This document shows positions 10,119 to 28,889 of a stretch of 64,000 nt of DNA, piece after piece. Under the pieces are notes generated by a model that was not told where the DNA came from, did not search any database, and worked only from the letters and a program-made list of their open reading frames with translations. Each line of letters starts with the position of its first letter. Within the stretch, counting starts at the first letter, position 1. This DNA comes from Trichoplax adhaerens (lineage: Eukaryota > Animalia > Placozoa), in assembly GCF_000150275.1 (NCBI RefSeq), contig NW_002060961.1, positions 62,001 through 126,000 on the forward strand, written 5' to 3'. Position numbers and translations under genes: made by a program.

Positions 10119-11178
10119 AGGGATCTTCAATTGTATACGAGTATTGTTGATGTGGTATTGAATATCAACTTGGATCATCCAAAATCATTAAAATACAGAG
10201 TATAATATTTTAGTTTCGTTGAAGAATTTGAGCTATTTAACGAAGCTATTCGATAAGTTATCGTTGTCAACATGCTGTATAAAAGTAAATTAGACATTAA
10301 TTCAAAAGTTGATTGATAACATTGCTTAATAGGTAGTGATTATGTATTGGAGGGAAATGAAGCAAGAGAATTAAGCAAAACTATGCAGTTTATTATTCCA
10401 CTTGCTAGCCAAAGTAGAAAACAAGACAAAAAATATCGTAGAGCAGCACGGATTAAGGTGACGAGATAATAATTGTGTGCCAAAGTTATATTCTGCTCTA
10501 TATTGCAAATACTTTCTTGAAAGTAATTCGATTGCAATCATAAGGTAGGTAAATTATAGTAATCCCCAAACAAGTAGATAAAGAATTGCATCACAAGACA
10601 GATAGTTGCCTTTATGCACATGTTATAAAACTCATATAATACTATTATAGCAATAGATAATTCAACAAATACCAATGCGGCAATGTCCCGTAATTCTATA
10701 GCAAATAATATTTTAACAATACAGCAGCAGGAACTTCTAAAACTAATACATTGGGACTTGGAAGTCCCTGACAGCAGCATGCCAAAATGGTATATTATCA
10801 ACGATAGTGCACTATAGTACGTAGTATTACTTGATTTATAAGCTATCATGTTACCACTATATCGATAAAATACTCAAAAATTTTATACCAAGTCCACTTT
10901 GACACTGTCCTTTTAATGAATAACGATAAACTACGAGATAGACTATCCTTGTAGCAGTATGAGTTCTCTCATCCTTCTCTGTAGATAACGCAAGAAAGTC
11001 TTTCTTAAGCAGATTTCATAGAAATGGATGCAGACTAGCGAATGATCCAACTTTCAAATATTCTTAATTAGGATAAACGATTAGTAAATTGCAAATAATG
11101 AATAAAGACATACTGTCTGCGAAAGTTTAACTCCGGTCAAAGATCGATTGTTGGACTTACCTTATCATACTAAAGAGT

Positions 11179-14143
11179 TTACAATTTTGATGGCTTTTTA
11201 CCAAACATGTAGAAAAATGGATAGCAAAGCTGTAACATTTCTCCTCCTGTACTTTCTCTTAACATTTCGGCGAATCTAAAATGTTTATGCAAGTATTTAA
11301 TTATGCATCATAAATAGTAATTCCTAACTCTCTTGTCCCTGTAACAAGACAACCTCCATTTTCACTTTATTTATGCAGTAACAATTCTTTAGTAGCGTTT
11401 GTTGTTTAAACGTACGTCCCAATGATCATATGTTCTTGATCATTTTCATTTAGTAAGGGATAACTATTTAAAGTGAAATTATTTTTAAATTATTTTTACT
11501 TACCGGTACTGGTACTATACTACAACGTCATCTATACTTATTTTATAGGGTATTACCCGTATGATATATTATGTCTGGCTTGCTAATTTCATAGCTAAGT
11601 TATTAAGAATATTACATACCGTACTAATAACATCCGATTTGCATTGGTGATCTAGTGATATTATTTAACTATGGTCAAACTGAATTATATATTGCGATCT
11701 GATTATATTTTATCGTCAAAACTGCCCACAGCTTTTCTTAATAGTCACAAAGCATAGTAAGACTTATATCCAACATGATGATAATTATGATGGAAGATCC
11801 AATGATTCAGCGAAAGTAGATTTAGTAACGTAGCCATTTAGAGATTGACACAAAGGCGTAGAGTAAGAAAATAGATTTTAAATTATTGACTACAAGTATC
11901 AAGTACTTACAGCAGACCAGTGTGTAAGCTATCATGAAGTAAAGTAAGAATCATTAACACCGTAACTATTGCAACTAACAACTTAATCTGAGGCAGAAAT
12001 TGTTAGTACTGCATTGAAAGCTTAAGAGATAGTACACCGGCAGAGAATACAATTGTGAATTAGTTCCGGAAGTTAAGCTAATGATTATGGAAAATGGCCA
12101 AGACTGTAAGTGCTATAAATAATTCAACACGACAAGTTATATTGGAATGTACGAGTATTGTAATAAGAATGTAAAGGTACCTACGTATATATTTAAGAAC
12201 AGTTATAAAATGCCTCAATTGAAGAGTATGATGATCATTCCAGTACATTCTGAAAACACTACAATCGCCCCAACCACCCTCTCTTTAAAATAGCAAGATG
12301 GTATTTTATGACTACTGCTAATAAAATAACTATAATATGTCCTGCTTGACATATTTATCTATCCACTAACCTTCTTTTCAATTCCGGATCTGGATACGGT
12401 AATTCGGCATCAACGCTATCGCCATACGTGTGAAGTAGACCAATATAACTATCGATATCCATCTGGTTGTCGACAGTATTTGATTCGCCCCTAAAAGCAC
12501 GTATAAAATTTATTAGAATTGAAATATCTGCAATGCACGAGCTGCAGACTATTACTAGCCAAGATCGTATGCCATAACTTTACAAGCTATAAGAAATACT
12601 TGAGCTGAAATGTTGCTATTCTTGCTCATACAGTATTATCAAAGCTCTATCAAGAAATGAATTACTCGTTTCATATCTTTCTTTCACTCTCTATATATGT
12701 TTTATCTTACCTTACTGCCTGGCTAAAAGGCCACTCGATATTACTATAGCGACATTTGCCACAATATTTAGCAAATTGATATGTCTCAACACTCAATGGA
12801 CCATTATATATCTAAATATCAATATTTACAGAAAAATATAAAATAAAAAATGATTCTATTGGCAATCAATATCAAGCTAATATTGAAACTAGTCTATAAG
12901 CCATTCAGCCATCATTCCACATCCAAGTGATTAGCTAATTGTCCCGACAGTGTTATAGATTTCTTGTAGTTGTCTCCTTGTTTAATGAGTTTTCCGTAGG
13001 ATGAATCATTTTTTATGCAGCCCATTTTGCATGGCTATCTTAAACTACTCTTCTGATTAGAATTACTTAAAATATTTTATGATTCTGAGCTACACATCTA
13101 CCTAACTCTAATCTAGTTGACATCGTTGAACTGCATTTCTATATACCACATTCCTATATCGGGTACCCATGCAAATCATGCTAGTCTACTTGATTAAATC
13201 AAAAAATAATTACTAATGCCTCTTTTCCAACATCTATGAATATAGCTATGACTTAATCTTATGGTCTCTGTGCGATACTACTAACCTACAGTAAAATAGT
13301 TGGCGTCGTTGAACTTCTTTTTAACTTGCCATTTTAGATCTTATGCTACTCAACTTGATTATAAATCTAAATACAATCACACTTGTTACGACACCTTCCC
13401 CTGCCTCTATGATTGAAACTTGCAGTTTATAAATCATGGTCAACGATCGAAATAGTGTACGAGTACAATACTAGGCATAAGTAACGTTATATGCATATTA
13501 GATAGGATGGACTCTAGTTCATGCTAGCTGAACGAGTATACCTAGCCAAATTTTTACGATGAAAATAGCAGACAACGATAGCGATAGGTAATAGTATTTG
13601 ATAGAATGAACTCAAGCTCATTTCAGTTTCTTGATAGTAACTTACGTAATAATTTAATTCCTCAGCTTGATCACAATTCATGATAACAGGATCATTATAG
13701 GCATACAATGCTACACAACCTGTACCAGGCTTAAGAACGCGATTAACTTCAGAAAGAAATTGATCGATATTAAACCAGTGGATAGCCTGAGCACATATAA
13801 CCAAATCGACGATATTATCTTCGAGGGGAAGATTTTCCGCTGGGCTAAGTTGATAGGTAATATTAGGATCATGGTTGTCTTGGCGAGCTAGATCGATTTG
13901 AGTTGCGCTATGATCGAAACCGATAATTCGATTAAAATACGGAGCATATTGCTGGGTTGATGTACCGGGACCACAGCCAACGTCGATGGCTAAATCAAAT
14001 TTGTCTTGTTGATTTATTCCTTGTTTTAAATAATCCATCACTTGTTGGATAAGAGAAGGCGGATAAGTAGGCCTGAATTTATCATAATTTTGACTTATCC
14101 AATTTTTATCAAAGACGTGATAAGGCTTATCTGGTTGTGTCAT
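11179..14143 (-). CDS. Class I SAM-dependent methyltransferase (Methyltransf_11; Crg1/Tmt1/DDB_G0268948-like), paralog 1, 4 exons, 271 aa
   Basis: Motifs Y..FRPTYP, AIDVGCGPG, GFDHSATQI, AENLP...VDLV.CAQAIHWF and RVLKPG. Exons 14143-13646, 12811-12711, 12490-12371 and 11275-11179 join in frame with GT-AG introns and end ...FGKKPSKL*. Confidence 0.9.
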
Positions 14144-14403
14144 GCTTAATGAGAACTTCTGAGAAAGCTAAAGGTAATTCTTATATAGAACTACTTCAAT
14201 TAATCGACTAAGATACGTTTAATGGATTGATTTTGCAGTCACTTTATAGCCAATGTACAATATTTCACGATGTAGTTGCTGAAAAGGATGAAATAGATTA
14301 TCGATTCACTACTTTCAAAGATTGGAAGTAGAAGATCTAGACAAAAATAAATTGTAAAGAATGAATCTCAAAATATCGACTAGGATGGCCACGTATCTAT
14401 TGC

Positions 14404-14537
14404 GGTCCATGTATGTGATGAAGACATCGTATATGCTGACTGTGATGACGAGGGCAATCTATATGATGGCCGAACTAACAGGCAAGCTTTCGCCATCATG
14501 GTCAGCGTATAAGATGCCTTTATAACATACATGGACC
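14404..14537. repeat. Ungapped 52-bp stem / 30-nt loop hairpin, present upstream of paralog 1 only
   Basis: 14404-14455 pairs with 14486-14537 (42 of 52 Watson-Crick). Absent at the paralogous site near 21600. Confidence 0.9.
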
Positions 14538-16944
14538 CTAACATATCTGAGAATTGAGATAGGGATAGGGAGAAAACTGTGTGTTTCGATCGGAGTCTAT
14601 TTCAAAGATAGTACCGTAACAACTTAAAAATCTATGCTGTAATTTTATGAATCTTCAAAGCAATGCATCTAAGAATTGAGATAAGGATAGGAAAATAAAC
14701 TGGTGAGTTATGCTCAGAGTTCATTTTAAGGAGAAGATTGACTTGGTCAAATCTTATCTGTCATTAAAGTAAAAAAATAGTACTTCCCCTTAACACGAAG
14801 TTTAGTTTAAGATATTCTTACAGTTGTAATTAAATTGAAATTCTCATTTTTATTCGTTGTACGATCTTATCAAGTTTCATCGAGAATCAATTCCAATTAA
14901 CTCAATGATACAAGTTAATGTCTAGTTCAATTGAACGGTGATTAAGCTTTCAAGAGGCAAATAGCGCCATCCCATTATGGTTAATCACGTACACTGCTAA
15001 GACTGTGCGATCGTTTCTTAATAGGTGCAAGTTAAATGATTTACGTCACGGTGACAATTTGCCTCGAGTTTACTTTATCCAATATGATGACTCTAGCGCA
15101 CAGGATGCATATAATAACTAACTCCAAGTGTTTCAAATAAGATAGAATTAGTGTAGAATATCGTGTATATACATCTACTTATTAAGGATGCTATACTTCA
15201 AAAAACTGAGGAAAAAGCATTCGTAGATGATTACTTTAATACTTAGTCAACTATAACTCAACAATTTAAATGGTTGGTTAAACAAGTAAAATATATATCT
15301 AACAACTAACAATGTATTACCTTATTTAACTATTTTCTACTTGTCTAGCTAATATCGACCTTACTATTTTTACTACATCAATGGATTAACTCATGTCGGC
15401 CAAGGGAACATGTAAAACGGATAGCACTCACATGAAATAAAAATGGACGAAGTACGATCAATAACAATCTAGATAAATTGATTAGGTTGATATTAGAATC
15501 ATGAATGAGATAATTTCTACTAGTCTACTGTTACAAATTTTTTCAACAAAGTAAATCAATCATCGCGACTATTCTAGATCTATCTATTCTATTACTCTTT
15601 GACTTACCGAGAGTTGAAAGGGTTGGAATGGCTTCAAGATGGTTTCCACAATATCCTTTATGATAGGCAGTTTACAAAATAAAGCATCATTCTATAGGAT
15701 ACTGGAGATTGCATGCATTAATATTTGATTATACTTCAATAAAAAATAATGCAGATTAATTATAAATGCGTAGATAACAATAAGGAACTACAACTAGTTG
15801 AATAAATAACTAATAGCTACCATAATAAAATACTTTTATCGCAGCAACTGTTCTGTAACAATGTCAATTTGAGTATAGTATTACTTGTTCTGCCTACTAT
15901 GGCCAACGCTATAATTCTTCATATTCTACATTACTATGATCAGTCAGTATAAGCTCTTTATGAAGACATATTACCTAATGGAAGCAATTATTTATTGTAG
16001 TCGAACCTTTTATTGGCTCTAAATCTACCTCTCTGTATTGATCAATTATTAGCTAGCCAATAATTCTTCCATTTTATTGTTAAGTCGAACTTTTATTGAC
16101 CATGAATCGTTTCCTATATGAGAGCTTTAGTATTATCCATTTTAATATCTATTTCTTACATTATTTGTAGCATTACTATCATTATCGTCATTAAACAGCC
16201 TGAAAATATACCATCAGAAATCATATATTGCTATTAGAATATCCTACCACTCCTCTAACAATGATGCTTTTAAATTAATTAGGCTCAGAATGATACAGTG
16301 TCCGTACGTAATTATATGAATCAATCGATTTTTCTATGTAGCTGTTACAATTTAGACATTGAGAACGGGTCTTAAACACTATTGTCACTAATACTTGTGT
16401 CCCCAATTGACTTAGGAGACTTATCGTAGTTAGACTAACTTTTGACTACACAGATAAGTTGCCAACGGGTAATAAGTTTAAGGACTATATTTATTGAGAT
16501 AAATCCTAGTCAAAAAATATACTAAAAAGTACGTTAGAAAACTCTTGGCAATAATGATCAAGTGAATCTAAAAATGATTAAATGGAACTGAACAGGTAAT
16601 TTAGTGCTCGGTTTTATATGTCTCGGCCTCCGCCGGTGGTGCTTGTGTTAACAGCTTAGACATAGCGACTTACACTGTATATTATAGGAGTCTAGATAAA
16701 AGGAGTTAACATAGATCAGTATAAGTCAACGCTAATTAACAATCATAAACTATTTGCGCTAATTAGAGCCTCAAGGCTCAGCACGAATTACGCCTTACAC
16801 TTAAGTATTAATATTCAGTTACTTAGATTTTAACCTTGACAACAGCAAGTCTCGTTAACGTCTATTAAACTACTGGAACAAACAACAATTTATATCAGAT
16901 ATTTTAATTAACGCTGTCATCATTATTTCGGAGCTTGGCTCCGT

Positions 16945-17295
16945 AACAGTATCAGTTAAGGGCTGAATTTATAGTCAGAAGGAATATTCGTATATGTCTA
17001 TCCTTACTACAATTAAGCCACAACATCGATAAAATTAATTAGGCTAAGAACTATACAGTTATGTATTTACTGATCTATTTTTTTAGGTATCAGTGAAGGG
17101 CTGAGTTTGTAGCAGTAGGAATATACACATATCCTTATTCCAATTAAGCCAGAACACCAACAAAATTAAGTAGACTAAGAGCTATACAATTATGTAATTA
17201 TCAATCTATTTTTCTATGTATCAGGTAAGGACTGAGTTTGTAGTCTGAAGGAATAAACGCCCATTCTTATTCCAATTAAGCCACAATATCAATAG
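16945..17295. repeat. Tandem repeat, 3 units of ~135 bp
   Basis: gtatcag...aagggctga.ttt.tag and ccttatt.caattaagcca at ~16950, 17088 and 17218. Confidence 0.85.
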
Positions 17296-18856
17296 AAATG
17301 ATGATCGATTTTATATTTTAAAGTCATACAATATCGAATCTGTGATCCTTATTGGCAATAAGGGAGTAATTGCCATATTACTTTTATTGCTCCTTTGCAA
17401 TACATCAATAATATTCTAATCAGCATTATAGAGTAATCGGATGTTAATAAAATGTTGTCAAATTATGCAAAGTAAACTTGCAAATGAGTGTTCAATCATA
17501 ATATTACTACTCAGCAATGGTTAATATAATTTTAATCTGTCCAGTAGCATTATTCTTCACATTAGGATATGTAGGGCAGATATTATAATTGCCGAATTAT
17601 TATCAAAGACTGTAATAAGGTTTCATCCGTGAATGCATTATTGAAAAGTAGTATTCTAGAAGCATAGTTGTGAATATAGTAGTGCCCGGCTATTGCCGGG
17701 ATATATATAATGTCGAATGGTAATACTAACTATTAATTATTAACAAATACAGTATTGCAGTGCTGTACCGCACATTTGTGCAGCATAAAGTACAGTGCAC
17801 GGTATAAAGTTACTGAACCTCTGACAGGTCTATCAAATGGTAATACTATCTGTTAAATGAGCACATTATCGTAAACCGTCAGCAAAGCGACGGGAGTTTG
17901 TACTAGTTTATTCTACTTGGACGATTACTGTTTTTTTTAACTGTTCAAATTCAAGCGATTTTTACAACATCATTAAAAAAGAGGATGGATTAACTATCAG
18001 CATATATGGTATTTGCTTAATTCTAACGTGATTGATAATATACCAAATAGGTAGTGGTTATGTGTTGGAGAGAAATGAAGTAACTACTGTAGGTTAAGCA
18101 AAACTAAGTAGTTTATTATTTCATTATGTAGCACAAGCAAAAGACTAGGCCAAAAATGACCATAGCGCTGCACAGCTCAAGATAAACTTAATTATTGCAT
18201 AATAGATATAGCATTATATTCTGCTCTATATTGCAGATACCCTATTTAAGTAATTCGATTGTAATCACAAGCTACGCAAATCAAAATAGCACTAAAACCA
18301 GCAGACAAAGAATAAAATCACAAGATTGATATCGTAATGTTATGCATTATAATATCATATCAAATTATCAAAATGTTATTTTAGCAAATATGGTATTATC
18401 CTACGATTCTATAGTATATCACGGTTACCTTAGGCAATGTCTTAGCACTAAAACAACATATCAAAAAAGCATATTATTAACCATAGTTAGCTATAGTAGT
18501 AATACGGAAAAATAAACTATCACGTTACAACAATATCGAAAAAATACAATCATTCTAGACCGAGTCCATTCTGATATTATCCTTTTTAATGAATAACGAT
18601 AAGCTACGAGATAGCTTAGTCTTGTAGCAACATAAATTCTTTCATTCTCATTTGTAGATTAAGGAAAGCAGTCTTTTTTCTGTCGATTTTAATAAAAATG
18701 AATATGGACTAGCGAATGATCCAAATTCCCAATACTTTTAATTCAATAACGTTTAGTAATTCCCAAAGGAAGGTAAGGAGATACTTTCAGGAAAGTTTAA
18801 TAAGTACACCCATCAAAGGTCGATTGCTGGTCATTAAGTTTATCAAACTAGAGAAT

Positions 18857-21354
18857 TTATATCTTTGACGGCTTACGGCCAAGCATATAATAATATGTAT
18901 AGCGATGTTGTAAAATTTCTGCCCCTGTACTTTCTTTCAACATTTTGGCCAGTCTGCAACATCAATGCAAATGTTAAAATTTATATTATCAATAGTAACT
19001 CCAAAATACCTCGATAAAATAAGTCTAATTTCCTAATTTTTATGACAAAGCCATTAAGAATAAAATGTACTTTACTAATGGCATTATAGATGGTATAGTT
19101 GTATTATTGAGCTAAGGTAAACCTGAATGGTATCTTTCAGTTGATTTGTATTTATCGACAAAAATTGCCAATAGTTGTTCTTCATTGTCATAAAGCATGG
19201 AAACATTTCTATCCAACATGATGATAGAAATCAATAATATATACGTGCTTATTAACTGACCTTATTTTCAATTCTGGATCTGGATATGGCAAATCGACAT
19301 TTACGTTATCACTATAGGTGTGAAGTAGATTAACATAAGCCTCGACATCCAATGGACTGTCGACAATAATTGAACTGTCCCTAGCACATGTAAAATTCAT
19401 TAAAATTGAGATAAAATACGTGCAATATACAAGCTGCATGTTATCACAAGTTATGATCGGATACAATAATTTTATAAGCTGAAAGAAACACTCGAGCTGT
19501 AATATGGCTATTCCTGCTAATACTATCCCCGTTCTATCAAGAAATAAATTACTTATTTCATATCTTTCTTCTACGCTCTCATTTGTCTTACCTTATTGTT
19601 TGGCTAAAAGGCCATTCGATATTTTTATAGCAACATTTAGTAAAATAATGAGCCGACTTATATTCCGGAACATCAAATAGATCAAAATAAATCTAAGTAT
19701 CACAATTTCAAAAAGTTAAATGAAAAAATTGATTCCATTGATAACCAATAACAAGCAAAGATTAATCTAGTTTTTAAGCTATTTAGCCATCATTTTACAT
19801 TCAAGGAACTAGTGAATTGTCCTGATAGTTTATGGATTCCTTATAGTTTTTCTCCACTGTCTATGACTTTTAATTACAATAGGTATCATTTTATTATATG
19901 GTCGACATTGCATGACGATTCTAAGCTGCTCTTCTGATCGGAAAATTACTTAAATTATCGTGTAATTTTAAGCTATACTCTTCATTAACTCTAGTCTAGT
20001 TGACATCGTTGAACTATACGCGCATTTCTACCTGCCATGTTCCAGCATCAGTTAACCATGCAAATGATACTAATTAACTTGATTACAACCACAAAGTGAT
20101 TACTTATATTCTTTCTCCTATAACGATAACTTGATCTTATAGCTTCTATGTTACGCTACTATACTACTATAAAACAGCTTGCATGGTGATTTTAAACTAC
20201 TCTTCCGATCGAAAAATGACTTAAATAATCTAGTGATTCTGAGTCATACTCTTTAACTCTAATCTACGCAAATGACATTGTTAAACTACGTTTCTACCTG
20301 CCATATTCCAGCGTGGGTTAATCATGCAAATGATACTACTTTGCTTGATTACAATCACAAAATGATTACTTATGTCTCTTCTCCTACAACAATAACTTGA
20401 TCTTATAGCTTTCATGTTACACTACTGTCTTATTGTGAACTATTTTCCCATTCGCCACGTTACACAGACCAACTTAACATCGTATGGCTACTTAACTTGG
20501 TTATGAATCAAAATTACAATTATTCTTGTTACTTTCCTCAGCCACTTTAATGGAGAGTTAAGGCTAATGAATCATAGTCAACGATCAAAATAGTATACAA
20601 CGTTAGCCATTGGTTACGATAGGGACAAGTATTCGATTGAACGAATTCAAGCTCATTCTAGCTAAGCGAACATACCTACTCAGAATTTTACTAAGTCAAT
20701 TTCCATTTCTTGAAAGTAACTTACATGATGATTTAGTTGCTGAGCTTCATCACAATTCATGATAACCGGAATGCTATAAGCATATAGTGCTACACAACCT
20801 GGAGTAGGTTTAAGGAAACAATTAACTTCAGCAAAAACTAGATCCATATTAAACTATAATTGCTCGACTTGATCATAATTCATGATAACAAGAAGGCTAT
20901 AAGCATACTGTACAATGCTATATATATAACCTGTATTAGGTTTTAGGACACGATTCACTTCAGCAAAAAATTGATCCATATTAAACCAGTGGATAGCCTG
21001 AGCACATACAACCAAATCGACAGTATTGTCTTCAAAGGGTAGTGTTTCTGCTGCGCTTACTTGAAAGGTAACATTAGGATGTTGATTTTCTTGGCGAGCT
21101 TGATCAAGTTGAGTTGCGCTATGATCCGTACCGATAACTCGATTAAAATATGGAGCATACTGTTTGGTCGATATACCGGACCCACAGCCAACATCAATGG
21201 CTAAATCAAATTTATCTTGTTGGCTTGCCCCTTGGCTTAAATAATCCATCACTCGTTGAATAAGAGAGGTTGGATAACTAGGCCTAAATTGATCATAATT
21301 TTGACTTATCCAAGTTTTATCATAGAGGTGATACGTCTGAGTTGGCTCTGTCAT
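18857..21354 (-). CDS. SAM-dependent methyltransferase paralog 2; 5 exons if 20930-20799 is spliced, 271 aa
   Basis: Exons 21354-20931, 20798-20725, 19692-19592, 19380-19261 and 18953-18857. Downstream exons are open and match paralog 1 in length (101/120/97 nt). The first two exons sum to 498 nt, identical to paralog 1 exon 1. The unspliced reading stops at 20854. Confidence 0.75.
19915..20430. repeat. Tandem duplication (~270 bp) inside a methyltransferase paralog 2 intron
   Basis: ctcttc.gatcg.aaaa..acttaaat, catgcaaatgatacta and aacttgatcttatagctt occur twice. The equivalent intron of paralog 1 has a single copy. Confidence 0.8.
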
Positions 21355-21594
21355 GGTTATTAAGAACTTTTCGGAAGATTGGAGTTAATTCTGATACAGG
21401 ACTGTTTCTAGCAATCGATCAAATAAGGCAAGTTCAATGGATCGATTTTGTAGTTACTTTATAGCCAATGTATATCAGGACTTACTTGTTGAACACAATA
21501 AAATGGATTGTTGATTCACCACTTTCAAAGATTGGAGGTACGAAATCTAGACAAAATAAATTGTAAAGAATCAATCATAAAATATCGGCCAGGA

Positions 21595-22320
21595 TGGCAA
21601 TGCATCTATGATTTAAAATAGGAATAAGGAAAAATTCTGTCTTTCAGTCAGAGTCAGTCCCAGGATAGTATTAGCTCACAGTCTATTCTCTAATTTCAAT
21701 TGTCTTTAAAGCTATGTATTTAAGAGTTGAGATTGGAACAAGAAAAACCTCTATATTTCTGTCAGAGTTTACTCTAGGATAGTATTAACTTATAACCTAT
21801 ACTCTAACTTTATCTATCTCCAAAGCTACAGTATACATGTAAGAGTTGCAATAGGAACAAGGAGAAACTCTGTGTTCCAGCCAGAGTTCACTCAAGGATA
21901 GTATTAACTTATAATCTAAATTCTGATTTTATTTATCTTCAAAGCGATGCATGTAAGGATTTGAGATAGGAAAAAGGAAAAACTCCGTTCCAGTCAGAGT
22001 TCATTAGTCTTAACTTATAATCTATGGTCTAATTTAATTTATCTTCAAAGCAATGCATCTAAGAGTTTGGATAATCAGAGTTCACTCAAGGATAGTATTA
22101 ACTTACTACCCATATTCTAATTTTATTTGTCTTCAAAGCTATGCATCTAAAAGTTGAGAAAGGAAAAAGGAAAAGCTCCGTGTTCCACTCTGAGTTAATT
22201 CAAGGATAGTATTAACTTACAATCTATCCTCCAATTTTGTTAGTCTTCAAAGCAATGCATCTACGAGTTGCGATCGGAATAAGGAAAAAAAACTTGGAGT
22301 TATGGTCAGAGTTCAGTTTG
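21595..22320. repeat. Tandem minisatellite, ~7-8 units of ~80-100 bp, upstream of paralog 2 (about 2 units at 14540-14730 upstream of paralog 1)
   Basis: Unit cttcaaagc.atgcatctaagagttgagataggaa..aggaaaaactc.gtgttccagtcagagttcactcaaggatagtattaacttataatcta. Confidence 0.9.
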
Positions 22321-23744
22321 ATGTAATACGAGCAAGTATTATTCCCCTACCCCTATCTAGTGATAGTTTCTCAATCATATTCTTCCAAATCCTAGCGGAT
22401 AGAATAGTGTTTTACTTCATAGTTATTGTTGAATATTACAGTAGTTAACATTTGGCAACACAATCGCTACAACATTCACTTAATATCTAACGTAGCAACA
22501 CGCTGACAAACATATGTTTGTCAAAGCATTTCTTCCATGCGTATAGTAGTCCTAAACTTGGTATAGTCTTTAAGCAAATTCGTACCCGGTGTTGGATTGG
22601 ACTTCTCTTCCCAATCCTAGAGCTTAGTTGAGATCAAGGAATGAGTGGGGTACTCTACTACAATTCCTTGAACTAAAATCATTGTTAAGAGGGAGCATAA
22701 TTTTAAATTTTTATTCAATTAAACAGTAATATTTTGTTCGATACTATTCAGTTATTTTTCACTAGTCTAGCGAATAGCTACCTTACTCTATTAGCTACGT
22801 TAATAGAATGACTCATGTCGGCCAAGGGAAACATGTAAAGTAGATAGTGCTCAGCTGAAATAAAGATGGTTAAACAACGATCATTCCTAATCCAGATAAA
22901 AAAGATTAGCTTGATATTAGTAGTCCCTGATATCGGAATCGTGAACAAAGATGGCGCCCACCAGTCTACTGTTACAGATTGTAAAATAGGGCTTAGTTTT
23001 ACTTCCATTGCAGTAGACTAGTTTCTACTAATATCAATACTGTCAATCAATCACGGCGGCTATTCGACATCTTTCTATTCCATCATAGTTTTACTTACTT
23101 GATAGGATCCAAATGATTTCTACAAGATCGTTGATGATAGAGAATTTACAATCTTAACCAGCATGCCAAAGTCTACTAATAAAAATTGGGAGGCACCAAT
23201 GAAGGACTACACTACAACTATTTCAATAGATGCCCTTGCTTATAGTTTCTAAGAAGAAAACTATTTTTACCTTAGCGATTATTCTAACAATGTCAAATCG
23301 AGTAACCAATTACTTGTTACCAATTATGACCAAAGCAATTACAGTTAGTAATTACTATTTATATTCTATTCTGCCGCGATTCAGTATCTATAAGAGAAGG
23401 CATTATGCAATAGCATTAATTAATTCTGTATTATTTAATAAACTTGTTTTGACTGTAAATTTTACATATACGTATGAATCAGTTATTAGTCTGACAATGG
23501 CTTTTCTATTTTATTCTAAAGTCGAAATCTTATTGGCCATGAATAGCTTATTATGAACGAACAGAAGAAGCTTTCTTGCTTGCGTTGGCCCCAATATTGC
23601 TGTCAATTTTAACACAAGACATTGGTCTATCCTACTACTGAATTAATAAATAATCAATACTACATGATTTCTGGTACAAACAAAGATTTTCCTTCCGTTG
23701 TTCAGACAGATTCATAAGCTATAGAAAAGATGCTCGCTATTAGT

Positions 23745-24360
23745 GTACAATAAAGTTCCACTATTTAATAACCACAACGTTAATAAGCATCTACATTGAT
23801 GAAAAGTTATGTCAAATGATGGCCTGGAAATTTCTACTTTTCCAATCAAGAGTACAACATGCTACGATTTACTGTATCAAATGTTACCAACGCTATTAAC
23901 TATATGCCCGTATAGATAATCATTTGTATCAATAAAAAATTTAGTTAAATTTTAAGCAGGAATTTCTTACTCATCGAATGAAAACTACAACAGATTACGA
24001 TTACTCTATAGAATATTTCCAGCGCTATTCACTATATACTCGTATAATAATCATTCGCATCAATAAAAACTTTGGTCAAATTTTTAGCAGGAAATTTTTA
24101 ATTGTCAATAAAAACTACAACATACCACGATTACTCAATAGAATCTTACCAACGCTATTCACTGTATACTCCTATAATCATTCGTATCAATGAGAACTAT
24201 GGTCAAATTATTAGCAGGAAATTCCTACTCCTCAAATGCAAACTGCAACATGCTACGATAATTTTGTAGAATATTACTAATGCTATTAACTATATACGTA
24301 TATAATCCTTCATATTTACCAGCAGAAAATTCCTACTATCAAGTAAAAACTACCATCGAA
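23745..24360. repeat. Tandem repeat, ~4-5 units of ~130 bp
   Basis: agcaggaaatt, aaaactacaaca, caacgctatt.actata and ataatcatt.gtatcaataaaaa recur about every 130 bp. Confidence 0.85.
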
Positions 24361-24917
24361 TACAAATACGCTAACGATGTAACCATTAATGATTATGAGT
24401 GATTTCTGCAAATTTGATTGGTGTAGCACAGGACCGTAGAAAAAAAAACAAAATTAGAATACAATTATTTTATATTATATATGTTATAGATATAAATTGA
24501 TATCGTTAAAAACTGATACAAAATGATAATCAGGAAATTTCTATGAACTTATTTCAATTTTATTTCCACAATCGCTAGCGATGACGATAGAATAATTAAT
24601 CCTAATGCATATCTAGATAATTTCGAAAATACAATTGCACTTGTTGTAATGAAGCTACAACGCCAATAGAAATTATTAGTAATTTTATATTTTGGGAGCA
24701 ATACAAATATTGATTCCGTAAATCACTTTGGTAATGGATACGCTTATTTTAGCAATTAAGCTTAGATTAATTCAAACCCGTCATATCAAAAAGTAGAGCA
24801 ATTAATGACTTTGTAAAAAATATAAAATATGCTCATACAACATTTAGTAATTACTTACAAGTTTTAGAAAACATAACACTAATCAGAACTGCTTAAACAA
24901 GTGGTGGTATAAAACAA

Positions 24918-27081
24918 TTAGAGAATGGACGGCTTGTGACCAAGCATATAGAAATAATCATAGGGAGTCTGCAACATTTCTGCTCCTGGAGTTTTGCTCA
25001 GCATTTCGATCAATCTAAAAGGTCAAACAAATATTTAATTGCGCGTCATCAATAGCAGTTTTAAACGATCTTGTTCCTTTAAATAAATAACCTCCACTTT
25101 CATTCTAGTTATACATTAACAATTATTTTGTAATGTTGACTATTTATAGATGTCAGTGATCATATATTCTTAATCATTGTCATAGAGTCAGAGATTAGGT
25201 TGTGAATATTATAAACTGGATTTATTTTCAAATTATTTTGACTTAGTAGCACAATCCTAGAACGTTACCTATACCTATTTATGCGGTACCCTGATAAATA
25301 TGTTTGGATTGTTAAATTTATAGCTAAGGCATTAAGCGTATAGCATATCATAATGATAGCATGCAATTGGTGTAGATAGTATAGTTTTTTTTCGCTAAGT
25401 TAAAGCTGAATTGTATCTTTAAAATCTAATTATTTCATTGTCAAACTACCCGCAGTTGTCCTTCATTATCACAAAGCATATTAGTATTTCCATCCAACAT
25501 GATAGTAATCCGTAAATACTTATGGAAACTGATCTTCTTTCATTTCCGGATCTGGATATGGCAACTTGACATCAATGCCATCGCTAAAGGTATGAAGTAG
25601 TTTAATATGGGTCTCGACATCCAATAGACCATCACCATAAATTGATTCGTCCCTGGCAAATATAAAATTGATTAGAATTGAGATAAAATAGCCGCAATGC
25701 ACGAACTGCTTGCGATGACTAGCCATGATCGTGTGCAATAACTTTACAACCTGAAAAATTATTATCCCTGCTCATACTATCCAAATTCTATGCAGAAATT
25801 CATGGCTCGTACAATGTCTTTCTTCCACTCTCTCTTGCCCTACCTTTATATCTGGCGATAAGGCCACTCGATATTTTTATAGCGACATTCAGTGAAATAT
25901 CGAGGAGGTCAAAGCGTGCGAACGCCAAACATGTCATTAAAAATCTAAGTCTAAATATTTTTGCCCTCAGAAAATAAATAAACAAAAATAAACAATAATT
26001 TATTGGTAAGAAATATCTGGTTAAGATTGAACCTACTCCATAAGCTAGCAATTCAGTCATTATTCTGTATCAAGTGAGTAGCTAATCATTCCTAGTAGTT
26101 TTACAGATTTCTTATGGCCATCTCTATTAATGACCGTTTATTGCAGAGGGATTAATTATTTTTTATGATGCAGTCCACTTTGTATGACTGTCCTAAACTG
26201 CTCTGTTGATATCGTTGAACTATTTCTTTTTCTGCTATGTTTCAATGTAGGTTAACCTTGCAAATAGTGCTACTTAATACTTATGTCTATTCCTTTGCAG
26301 CCATGACTTAATCTTATAGCTTTGGTGTTATACTACTGCTCTACTATAAGTTAAATAGTGTTGCTAAACTACTTTTCGACTTGCATGTTGCACACGCCAA
26401 TTTTACATCTTATGCTACTTGATTATAAATAAATTAAAATGTAATCGCTTTTACTGATCTTCCTACTACTATGAATGAGTCTTACTGCTTATAAATCATG
26501 GCCAACGATTAAAATAGTAGACACTGATAGGCATTGGTAATGATATTGGATGGAGAGGACTCAAATTGATTCTTTGTGAGTGTATCTACTCGAAAATTTC
26601 ACGCTGAATAATAGTAAACAACGGTAGGATATAGGTATTGGTGTGAGATCGAATAGACTCAAATCCATTCCTATTTCTTGATAGCAACTTACATAAAAAT
26701 TGAATTGCTGAGTTGGATCATAAATTAACGGTAACAGGAGACCTATAAGCATGCAAATGGTGCACAACCTGTATCAGACTTAATTACACGATGAATTTCA
26801 TCAACAATCGTTCAATATCTAACCAATGGATAGTCAGAGTACAAGTGACAAAATCGTCAACATTGTCTTAAAGGGGTAGATTTTCCGCTGAGTTCTCTTG
26901 ATAGGTAATATTAGCATGTTGGTTGTCTTAATGAGCTTGATCAATTTGAGCTACCCTATGATCAAAACCGATAATTCAATTAAAATACAGAACATAACGA
27001 TTGACTGTTGTACCTGGTCCATAGCACATATCGATCACTAAATCAAAGTTATTTTGCTTGTTTAGCTGTTGGCTTTAGTAA
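24918..27081 (-). pseudogene. SAM-dependent methyltransferase paralog 3, pseudogene
   Basis: All four exons are recognisable. The 5' ~36 codons are missing, exon 1 has stops, SAM motif I is degraded (IDMCYGPG), exon 2 has two stops (..RTL*PPR..RQI*R), and the exon 3 donor is mutated (AG/AT). Confidence 0.88.
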
Positions 27082-27327
27082 TTGTCACACACCACTAGGG
27101 GCAAAGTAGTCTACATACGCCAATGTTTACGAAGAACGCCTCTTACTGACTTGAAGAGGCGAGATTAGTTATATCACCAAATAATTCAGTTCCAACGACC
27201 GAATACTATAGTATAATTATAGCATCACTGATAGTGTAGACGAGGTAGTCAGAGATTTACTACTATTTATTACTGAAGAAATCTTGACAAACTAGTTGAC
27301 TAACTAACCGGACTAACTAACTAAAAA
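27082..27327. mobile_element. Truncated copy B of the dispersed element at 9563-10118
   Basis: Near-identical to 9835-10118 (e.g. acttgaagaggcgagattag.tatatcaccaaataattcagttccaacgaccgaatactat), with an internal deletion. Abuts the 5' truncation point of paralog 3. Confidence 0.8.
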
Positions 27328-28889
27328 GTGGTCTTTAGGTACCAGCCTATTATAGTCTCATCAGAAACTCCTGGTGCATATAGAGTAAAACTATACTTCT
27401 AAAGTTATAGGGATTAATATGAATATTGTCATTAAAGATTTCATATAAGAAAATTTATCAACAACCTCTATTATTAAGAACTAATAATAAACTAACAAAG
27501 AGCTTAACTCTTAACACAATATGACAATTCCGTAATCCTTTAATTAGTTAATGGAATCAATTGTCAACACTAGCAATGCATTATGAACTTTATTTATAAT
27601 GTACTATATCTATTAGCCGATAATTTACAAGGGTAGTTCTTAGGTGTTATAGTAGCAGTATTATATTCTTAGTAGATCTTTCGGCAGATCAGGGTAATAA
27701 TCTGTAGAAGCAACTCAAAGTAAGTGATTTACTTTAGATTAATAAACTTGTCAGGAAGTAGTCCGTGACAGACTGTAACATCTATACCTCAAATTTCGTC
27801 ATTTACTAAGAATTTTAATGATTTAATGATTTAATATTGAAATGGGTATTCTAGACGTCAATGCGCGTTTTGCTACTTTAAAAAGCTTTACGGAACACCA
27901 CATCAGTCAATGATGCGCTATATCTTTTGATCACTTATAGTCTACAATAGTTGCAATTTTTTTATTATCAATTAGTTCTACACTGTATACCGTATGCAAT
28001 AGAAATTAATAATTTTAAACTGCAAACTCTGCGAATAGATGTACAGAAAACAGAATATAGTCAAATTTAAGTCAATAAAAAATAGAGTAGCAAATTAAAG
28101 CGTCAGCTGGAAAGATATCTTTTACAAGCTATCTAATCATAAGGTGGCATGCATGCCTAAGCTATTAGAATCAATGCCGTAAATCTAACCTATCATGCAG
28201 GCGCGCAGGGTAAAGTTGAAGCATAATTACTAAAAATATTATTTTCGATACCGCATAAACACGTGTATTGTTCGATATATAAGATTTATGTATTAAATAT
28301 GGTTACATTTACAAATGATCTTGTATGTATCCGTATCTCCATTGCAGATTTAAAATTTTTATAATTACAATATATTAGTTTCAAATTCGTCAGGATGTTT
28401 AGGTTAACGTGTTCAACGTTTTATCTTGTAGTTTAGATCACAAATAAATAATACTATAATGATATTAATAAGAAATAAAAAATGCAAGCACAGTGTCCAT
28501 TTTCCGTTTTAAGATGGGGATAATATTCGACAATTGATTATTTTTATAATTCTCTGTTTCTGTTTAAGTATTGAAGCTACTGGCAACAACTCTAAATTAA
28601 GCTCCTATTCTGTACAATATGAATCAAAATTTTCGGACTTAGTCCGGTTTAAAATTTTATCGTATAGTCAAGCATAGTAATATATTACAAGATTAGCAGT
28701 GTTATAATTTTTGTAATAGATATATAATTTATAAAATTCCATCTAAAAATAAGGTCAAGGTCTTCATCTATTATAGTAGTCTATTACAGGATATACGATT
28801 GAATACAATTTGCCTTTCAACTATATTTGAAAAATTAAAAGTCTAAAACAATAATTAGTGATTAGGACTAATTTGGCTAACGCAATTTA

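Follow-up and report, generated by a model that had tools for sequence, protein, structure and literature searches.

In the 64,000-nucleotide stretch of the Trichoplax adhaerens genome analyzed here (contig NW_002060961.1, positions 62,001 to 126,000; hereafter the window, whose own numbering is used throughout), a putative methyltransferase gene on the minus strand, paralog 2, was found to have its first exon split by an intron of 132 nt (20799-20930). With a probability of roughly 0.9, this intron was created by tandem duplication of a segment of the exon in which it lies, as envisaged in the model of Rogers, and the source duplication is still visible. It would be a rare natural instance of intron birth by tandem duplication in which the source has remained legible; one locus displays both copies, the duplicated AG|GT, the spliced RNA, an unchanged product and the separate fates of the exonic and intronic half-copies.

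A duplicated piece of exon 1 and its splicing

Two adjacent families of direct repeats were identified in exon 1 by repeat search, namely D1 (20923-20986 versus 20791-20854; 64 nt, 84% identity, spacing 132) and D2 (20857-20907 versus 20734-20784; 51 nt, 82% identity, spacing 123). Judged from their arrangement, they correspond to a single tandem duplication, in agreement with an earlier sequence-only reading of this DNA, which had claimed that the 3′ part of exon 1 is duplicated in tandem on the minus strand. Copy 1 occupies 20855-20986 (132 nt) and copy 2 occupies 20732-20854 (123 nt). The repeat spacing shifts from 132 to 123 between D1 and D2, and a three-way alignment with paralog 1 places a 9-nt insertion at 20914-20922, in the intronic part of copy 1. 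This insertion accounts for the different lengths of the two copies and for an intron of 132 rather than 123 nt; as it is confined to copy 1, the original unit comprised 123 nt, that is, 41 codons in frame. Tandem Repeats Finder missed the duplication, whose two copies have diverged and differ by an indel, so that they fall below its score.

Each copy contains CAG|GT (20933-20929 and 20801-20797) at the Thr/Pro-Gly codons, as previously noticed, with the donor G at 20930 and the acceptor AG at 20800-20799. The new intron consists of the 3′ part of copy 1 and the 5′ part of copy 2. Positions 20986-20931 of copy 1 are exonic and form the end of exon 1a (20931-21407; ATG at 21354, 424 coding nt), while 20930-20855 are intronic and decayed. 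In copy 2, positions 20854-20799 are intronic and provide the branch region, the pyrimidine tract and the AG, and 20798-20732 are exonic and belong to exon 1b (20725-20798, 74 nt), once the end of exon 1. An in-frame TAG is found at 20854-20856, at the junction of the two copies, where translation of an unspliced transcript would stop; copy 2 and paralog 1 reveal that it arose through A>T at 20856, after the duplication. Removal of the intron leaves 424 + 74 = 498 coding nt, which equals the length of exon 1 of paralog 1 (14143-13646). The proposal that the GT of copy 1 and the AG of copy 2 together remove 132 nt including the TAG, and thereby restore 498 nt, was therefore correct.

A run search identified 20 runs from seven studies that contain this stretch, under two organism labels, and the duplication is present under both. 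Contigs were compared over 18600-21500 from X19 and X20 (recorded as RNA-seq; organism A, study P4), from X14 (probable RNA; organism B, study P6) and from the DNA run X2 (organism B). The contigs of X19, X20 and X14 contain a joint 20795->20928 that skips 132 positions (CT..AC, cut +3), and read on the minus strand this joint is a GT..AG intron from 20930 to 20799, in phase 1 of a Gly codon (G|GT). It is ambiguous over 6 nt only (CAGGTT), which fit both sides, and the sole GT..AG choice lies inside. Each of the three runs shows four minus-strand GT..AG joints, at 19260-18954, 19591-19381, 20724-19693 and 20930-20799. A single contig of X20 consists of 20725-20795 followed by 20928-21342, and in X19, as we read its parts, a 1069-nt contig joins exons 1a, 1b, 2, 3 and the last exon. 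The RNA depth in the intron-only bin 20831-20927 is zero in all three runs, unlike in the old 1032-nt intron of the same gene, which shows low-level RNA coverage, and the depth of the joint-carrying contigs is similar to that of the neighboring exons. The DNA run X2 shows no joint and contains 18600-21007 in one uninterrupted piece. The 132-nt segment is spliced out in vivo and kept in the DNA. Whether it is actually spliced had been left as an inference by the sequence-only reading, which placed the expected junction between 20931 and 20798; this junction is found in two studies and under both organism labels, and the joined form, rather than a retained transcript, is the only form assembled in the three RNA libraries.

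The spliced product can also be recognized among database proteins in P0002 (271 aa), a Trichoplax sp. H2 entry that stands in for the product in our comparisons. When the exons were compared piece by piece, with split codons dropped, the pieces of paralog 2 matched P0002 at 97.6-100% identity with one replacement, in exon 3, and P0002 is therefore the product of paralog 2. Across the junction it reads ...KPNTGCVALY..., so that the public H2 gene model already contains the intron.

An assembly artefact was considered and ruled out. A contig from the independent H2 assembly (L009) shows 99.6% identity across 3 kb and carries the same 132 nt without a difference, and the divergence of the copies by 16-18% makes a collapse or an expansion during assembly impossible. 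The joined sequence is absent throughout the genome DNA with one mismatch allowed, and the paralog-2 locus is the only one in the genome.

At this site, where they show the motif KPGTGC, paralogs 1 and 3 and three further paralogs elsewhere in the genome (L003, L005, L006) have an unbroken exon 1. The duplication is likewise missing from all five, as had been stated earlier for paralogs 1 and 3. The ortholog of the hemichordate Ptychodera flava (L011) has no intron at the site, one exon spanning residues 92-173; at the Saccoglossus locus the residues in question were not covered by a usable match, and only Ptychodera is informative. Protein searches returned close relatives only from Trichoplax sp. 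H2 and no matches from Hoilungia or Cladtertia. A pre-duplication allele in a related strain was not found; the H2 assembly and both organism labels carry the duplication. D1, D2 and the three-way alignment show that the intron matches its flanking exons crosswise, its 5′ part being homologous to the downstream exon and its 3′ part to the upstream one. Given the lack of an intron at this site in six related genes and the homology of the intron to the exons on either side of it, the comparison supports a gain in paralog 2 rather than losses elsewhere, and the earlier suggestion of a gain now extends to five intron-free Trichoplax paralogs and a hemichordate ortholog.

Divergence of the copies and origin of the intron

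The differences between the two copies were polarized with paralog 1 as the single outgroup. The exonic halves show 5 synonymous and 2 replacement changes (both Q/E exchanges), and the intronic halves show 1 synonymous and 12 replacement changes in addition to the stop-creating change and the 9-nt insertion (exonic versus intronic changes, Fisher's exact test, p = 0.007). Relative to paralog 1, the ratio of nonsynonymous to synonymous substitution rates (dN/dS) is 0.18 for the exonic halves versus 0.80 for the intronic halves; over the whole of paralog 2 it is 0.37, with a dS of 0.53. These values bear out the observation that the parts of each copy inside the intron are the decayed ones, and they indicate that the exonic halves are under purifying selection while the intronic halves have lost their coding character. 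The DNA run X2 shows two extra variants in the exon 1 region (20832 and 20838), both of them intronic.

Overall, 22 of 117 aligned sites differ between the copies (K ~0.22), and the intronic halves alone show ~0.12 changes per site, while one lineage's share of the synonymous distance between paralogs 1 and 2 is ~0.27. H1 and H2 differ at 8 of 1760 nt, or ~0.45% of the intron sites here, and exon 1 is without differences. As a rough inference from these distances, the duplication may have occurred near the midpoint of the time elapsed since paralogs 1 and 2 split, long before the separation of H1 and H2.

Both splice sites have the optimal CAG|G on their exon side. On its intron side the new donor reads GTTATA, while the older donors of paralog 2 are GTAAGT, GTAAGA and GTCAGT and those of paralog 1 are GTAAGT, GTAAGA, GTTAGT and GTACGT. 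Compared with eight other donors of the two paralogs, read from the sequence, GTTATA is indeed the weak donor that it had been said to be, yet it is used in RNA. The ancestral donor was probably GTTGTG, as in copy 2 and paralog 1, and weaker still, which makes G>A at +4 and +6 derived. The stretch before the AG had been described as pyrimidine-rich, and counting by eye over 20 nt gave 15 pyrimidines in the intronic copy, whereas the exonic copy has 11 and paralog 1 has 12; in this stretch C>T, G>T and A>C are derived, and one further change, to C, is unpolarized. TTAAT- and CTGAA-like motifs located ~20-32 nt upstream of the AG are candidate branch sites. By its termini, its pyrimidine stretch and a plausible branch site, the new intron is a U2-type GT-AG spliceosomal intron. 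The derived changes suggest selection for better splice signals, although the counts are small, and the pyrimidine gains before the AG (two A>C, one G>T) may run against an AT-ward mutation bias.

In the mechanism that we propose, a 123-nt in-frame piece of exon 1 (41 codons) containing an ACAG|GT proto-splice site was duplicated head to tail. Today the upstream copy provides the donor GT and the downstream copy the acceptor AG, and the removal by the spliceosome of exactly one repeat period (now 132 nt) leaves mRNA and protein length unchanged. Since the duplication, the intronic half-copies have lost their coding character and gained a stop, while the outer half-copies have stayed under purifying selection. 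Consistent with this, the intron length of 132 nt equals the spacing of D1, and the donor GT and the acceptor AG come from two copies of one AG|GT motif; every defining feature of the Rogers tandem genomic duplication model that could be tested was found at this locus, and the sequence-only reading had likewise seen a fit to that model. We infer that the duplicated AG|GT alone started splicing and that the later changes (G>A at +4 and +6, purine to pyrimidine before the AG) improved it. As the newly duplicated insert kept the frame and contained no stop, a phase of partial splicing or retention would have been possible. An unspliced transcript today would have its premature stop well upstream of three exon junctions, and a transcript with a premature stop far upstream of exon junctions is an expected target of nonsense-mediated decay. 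Tentatively, the locus might be regarded as an intron of intermediate age that records how a young intron matures: the donor moved toward the consensus, pyrimidines increased and a stop was gained, possibly by way of a retention stage. If these changes were selected, the signals would have been optimized after a one-step birth.

A variant of this explanation is a birth in two steps (intronization), in which the duplication first gave a 41-residue in-frame insert or was only partially spliced, and splicing became constitutive later. Such a course would agree with an original 41-codon unit that was in frame and without a stop, the TAG having come later through A>T at 20856, with the change of the donor from GTTGTG to GTTATA, and with the increase from 11-12 to 15 pyrimidines of 20 before the AG. 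It would also agree with a re-enactment in ATP2A2, where a fresh duplication was spliced in 6-16% of the mRNA (PMC3265369). However, the CAG|G on the exon side was optimal from the start at both sites, and a 41-residue repeat in a Rossmann-like fold would probably be harmful, which favors early splicing. We consider the two-step course conceivable but somewhat doubtful.

Alternatively, the joined RNA might not stem from splicing at all but from a duplication-free allele, a second locus or template switching by reverse transcriptase. Template switching classically takes place between direct repeats, an identical joined sequence would result from an allele predating the duplication, and the DNA compared (X2) is not from the X19/X20 sample. 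Nevertheless, the junction lies within a 6-nt window that holds the only GT..AG pair, despite ~115 nt of shared homology, along which template switching would scatter junctions and give a minority product. The joined form is instead the sole assembled form in three libraries of two studies, at exon-like depth, and it is missing from the assembly, from X2 and from the H2 assembly, with paralog 2 present at a single locus. An origin of the joined form other than splicing is thus largely refuted and very improbable.

Still less credible is that paralog 2 is a decaying pseudogene, its exon 1 broken by the duplication and the stop. The TAG in the unspliced frame, the neighboring paralog 3 (a pseudogene with six stops), the loss of a 48-nt exon (see below) and the high dN/dS versus paralog 1 in exons 2 and 3 (0.92 and 0.64) could be taken in its favor, but the transcript is present, fully spliced and has an intact 271-codon frame, the exonic halves of the duplication have the 5:2 ratio of synonymous to replacement changes and the low dN/dS given above, and exon 1 is identical in H1 and H2. 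An in-frame stop in a duplicated exon should not lead to a pseudogene call before RNA has been checked. An ancestral origin of the intron, with losses in every other paralog, agrees with the bare pattern of presence and absence only and is refuted by the homology of the intron ends to the opposite flanking exons, which is not expected of an old intron; the absence of the intron from five paralogs and the hemichordate ortholog also speaks against it.

Several points weigh against the creation of a regularly spliced intron by tandem duplication as described here. The RNA evidence consists entirely of assembled contigs, in which the completeness of splicing is not measurable and rare forms are dropped, and some retention is likely because the donor is poor on its intron side. 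The run type of X14 is a guess, though all four splice joints are present in it, and the DNA run (X2, organism B) does not come from the same individuals as X19 and X20. The counts in the selection test are small, with 20 polarized changes and one outgroup, and the case for a gain is built on paralogs and a distant ortholog.

The host gene and its paralogs

Exon 1 of paralog 2 matches Pfam Methyltransf_11 (PF08241) in a profile search with an E value of 1.8e-25, exon 1a reaching 89.8 bits versus a curated cut-off of 21.2. By this family profile, the gene is predicted to encode a class I S-adenosylmethionine-dependent methyltransferase of the Methyltransf_11 family. The closest database proteins in a protein search are two Trichoplax sp. 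H2 entries annotated as 'putative methyltransferase', of which P0001 (287 aa) is 99% identical to paralog 1 and P0002 is 74% identical to paralog 1 exon 1. The best named relatives further out are animal 'putative methyltransferase DDB_G0268948' proteins with 30-35% identity, and compared with this family Trichoplax shows a local gene expansion. Among solved structures, the nearest ones are those of a type 11 methyltransferase (4hg2) and the yeast trans-aconitate 3-methyltransferase (3g5t). No paper connecting Trichoplax with this methyltransferase family or with this intron was found in a literature search, and an Rfam search of 11000-28000 gave no match.

Paralog 2 extends on the minus strand from the ATG at 21354 to a stop in the last exon, whose coding part including the stop lies at 18857-18953 and whose 3′ untranslated region (UTR) continues at least to 18600. 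Upstream of exon 1a, which is covered by RNA contigs 20928/20979-21407, a 5′ UTR intron of 78 nt (21408-21485, GTAAGT..TAG) is indicated by the loose end at 21407 of the X19, X20 and X14 contigs, which matches 21486-21515 exactly; short introns are therefore normal in paralog 2. Exon 1b is represented by RNA pieces 20725-20795 joined on both sides and matches P0002. It is followed by the old intron (19693-20724, 1032 nt, donor GTAAGT), whose position is common with paralog 1 and whose joint 19692->20725 is present in the three RNA runs, and then by exon 2 (19592-19692, 101 nt) and exon 3 (19261-19380, 120 nt), both supported by RNA joints and by matches to P0002. At position 19654 in exon 2, X19, X20, X14 and X2 have T and the window and the H2 assembly have C, which is probably an allelic difference.

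The three downstream exons of paralog 2 had been described as intact. They are indeed spliced with an intact frame, but paralog 1 has four such exons, and paralog 2 has lost one of 48 nt. In paralog 1 this exon reads SYPLLNENDQEHMIIGT at ~11417-11464, and its content is also found in hemichordate orthologs. A relic (…SMLYDNEEQLLAIF…) is present in paralog 2 at 19165-19208 on the minus strand, inside the intron 19260-18954; it carries a 4-nt deletion, lacks a GT donor and is skipped by the RNA contigs. This in-frame loss accounts for 271 versus 287 residues, so that paralog 2 lacks a 16-residue segment kept in paralog 1 and hemichordates. Paralog 2 has both gained an intron and lost an exon in frame.

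Paralogs were searched for in the whole genome assembly (105.6 Mb in 1414 contigs). Exon 1 of paralog 1 (13646-14143, minus strand, 498 nt) is undivided and was taken as the pre-duplication outgroup. Paralog 3 (~26718-27083, minus strand) is a pseudogene whose exon-1 match contains six stops (2 TGA and 4 TAA). The three further paralogs (L003, L005, L006) lie on other contigs, one of them being present twice, and their matches are stop-free. Tree building grouped paralogs 1, 2 and 3 in a single clade (100% support), within which paralog 3 may be the sister of paralog 1. In the Ptychodera flava ortholog, introns are located near residues 43 and 92 that are missing from the Trichoplax exon 1 (20931-21354), and intron loss may have produced the long first exon seen in the Trichoplax paralogs.

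Further repeats were observed in the introns of the two genes. Intron 1 of paralog 2 contains a tandem repeat of its own (20025-20173 versus 20291-20439; 149 nt, 83% identity, spacing 266 nt), and intron 1 of paralog 1 contains a weaker one (13084-13138 versus 13267-13321). RNA contigs of X14 continue from intron 1 of paralog 2 into paralog 1-like intron sequence (loose ends at 20015 and 20179). At this locus, small tandem duplications appear to be common.

Comparison with known intron gains

The origin of new spliceosomal introns is a long-standing question, and placozoans are a lineage with few reported intron gains. The present case makes it possible to test whether a bare duplication is sufficient for splicing and which of the later changes raise its efficiency. 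The tandem-duplication model was put forward by Rogers (1989), as summarized in PMC4974935, and intron gains with an identified source sequence are few (PMC4974935).

The closest parallel, and the best-known animal example of the model, is the intron of ATP2A1 in jawed vertebrates (Hellsten, Aspden, Rio, Rokhsar 2011), which is more than 420 million years old and for which an inferred ancestral sequence and a minigene re-enactment were used (PMC3265369). Like the paralog 2 intron, it interrupts a Gly codon in phase 1 at AGGT, has undivided paralogs and is attributed to duplication of an exon segment that left the coding sequence unchanged. Unlike in ATP2A1, where the source was reconstructed, the copies in paralog 2 are still 82-84% identical and the source is directly visible.

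In two fission-yeast genes, multiple 24-bp exon units containing AGGT are duplicated in tandem, and expressed sequence tags show an intron across the duplicates (PMC4974935). In contrast to these many 24-bp copies, paralog 2 shows a single duplication of 123 nt, in an early-branching animal and with measurable decay of the intronic parts. For Drosophila, five novel introns at proto-splice sites were described, for which tandem duplication was considered 'probable' (Lehmann et al. 2010; PMC2891723). That work predicts that the size of the intron equals that of the duplication and that a multiple of three allows retention as an alternative, and both predictions hold for the paralog 2 intron. The Drosophila cases were inferred from the properties of proto-splice sites, whereas in paralog 2 the repeat itself is preserved.

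Finally, the intron of a potato RdRp gene (Ma, Lan, Niu 2016) is a recent gain with a tandem-duplication source and transcript support (PMC4974935). The duplication in potato spanned an existing intron-exon boundary and inherited the acceptor, the branch site and the pyrimidine tract, whereas the paralog 2 intron draws all its signals from what was once coding sequence, in keeping with the original model of Rogers.

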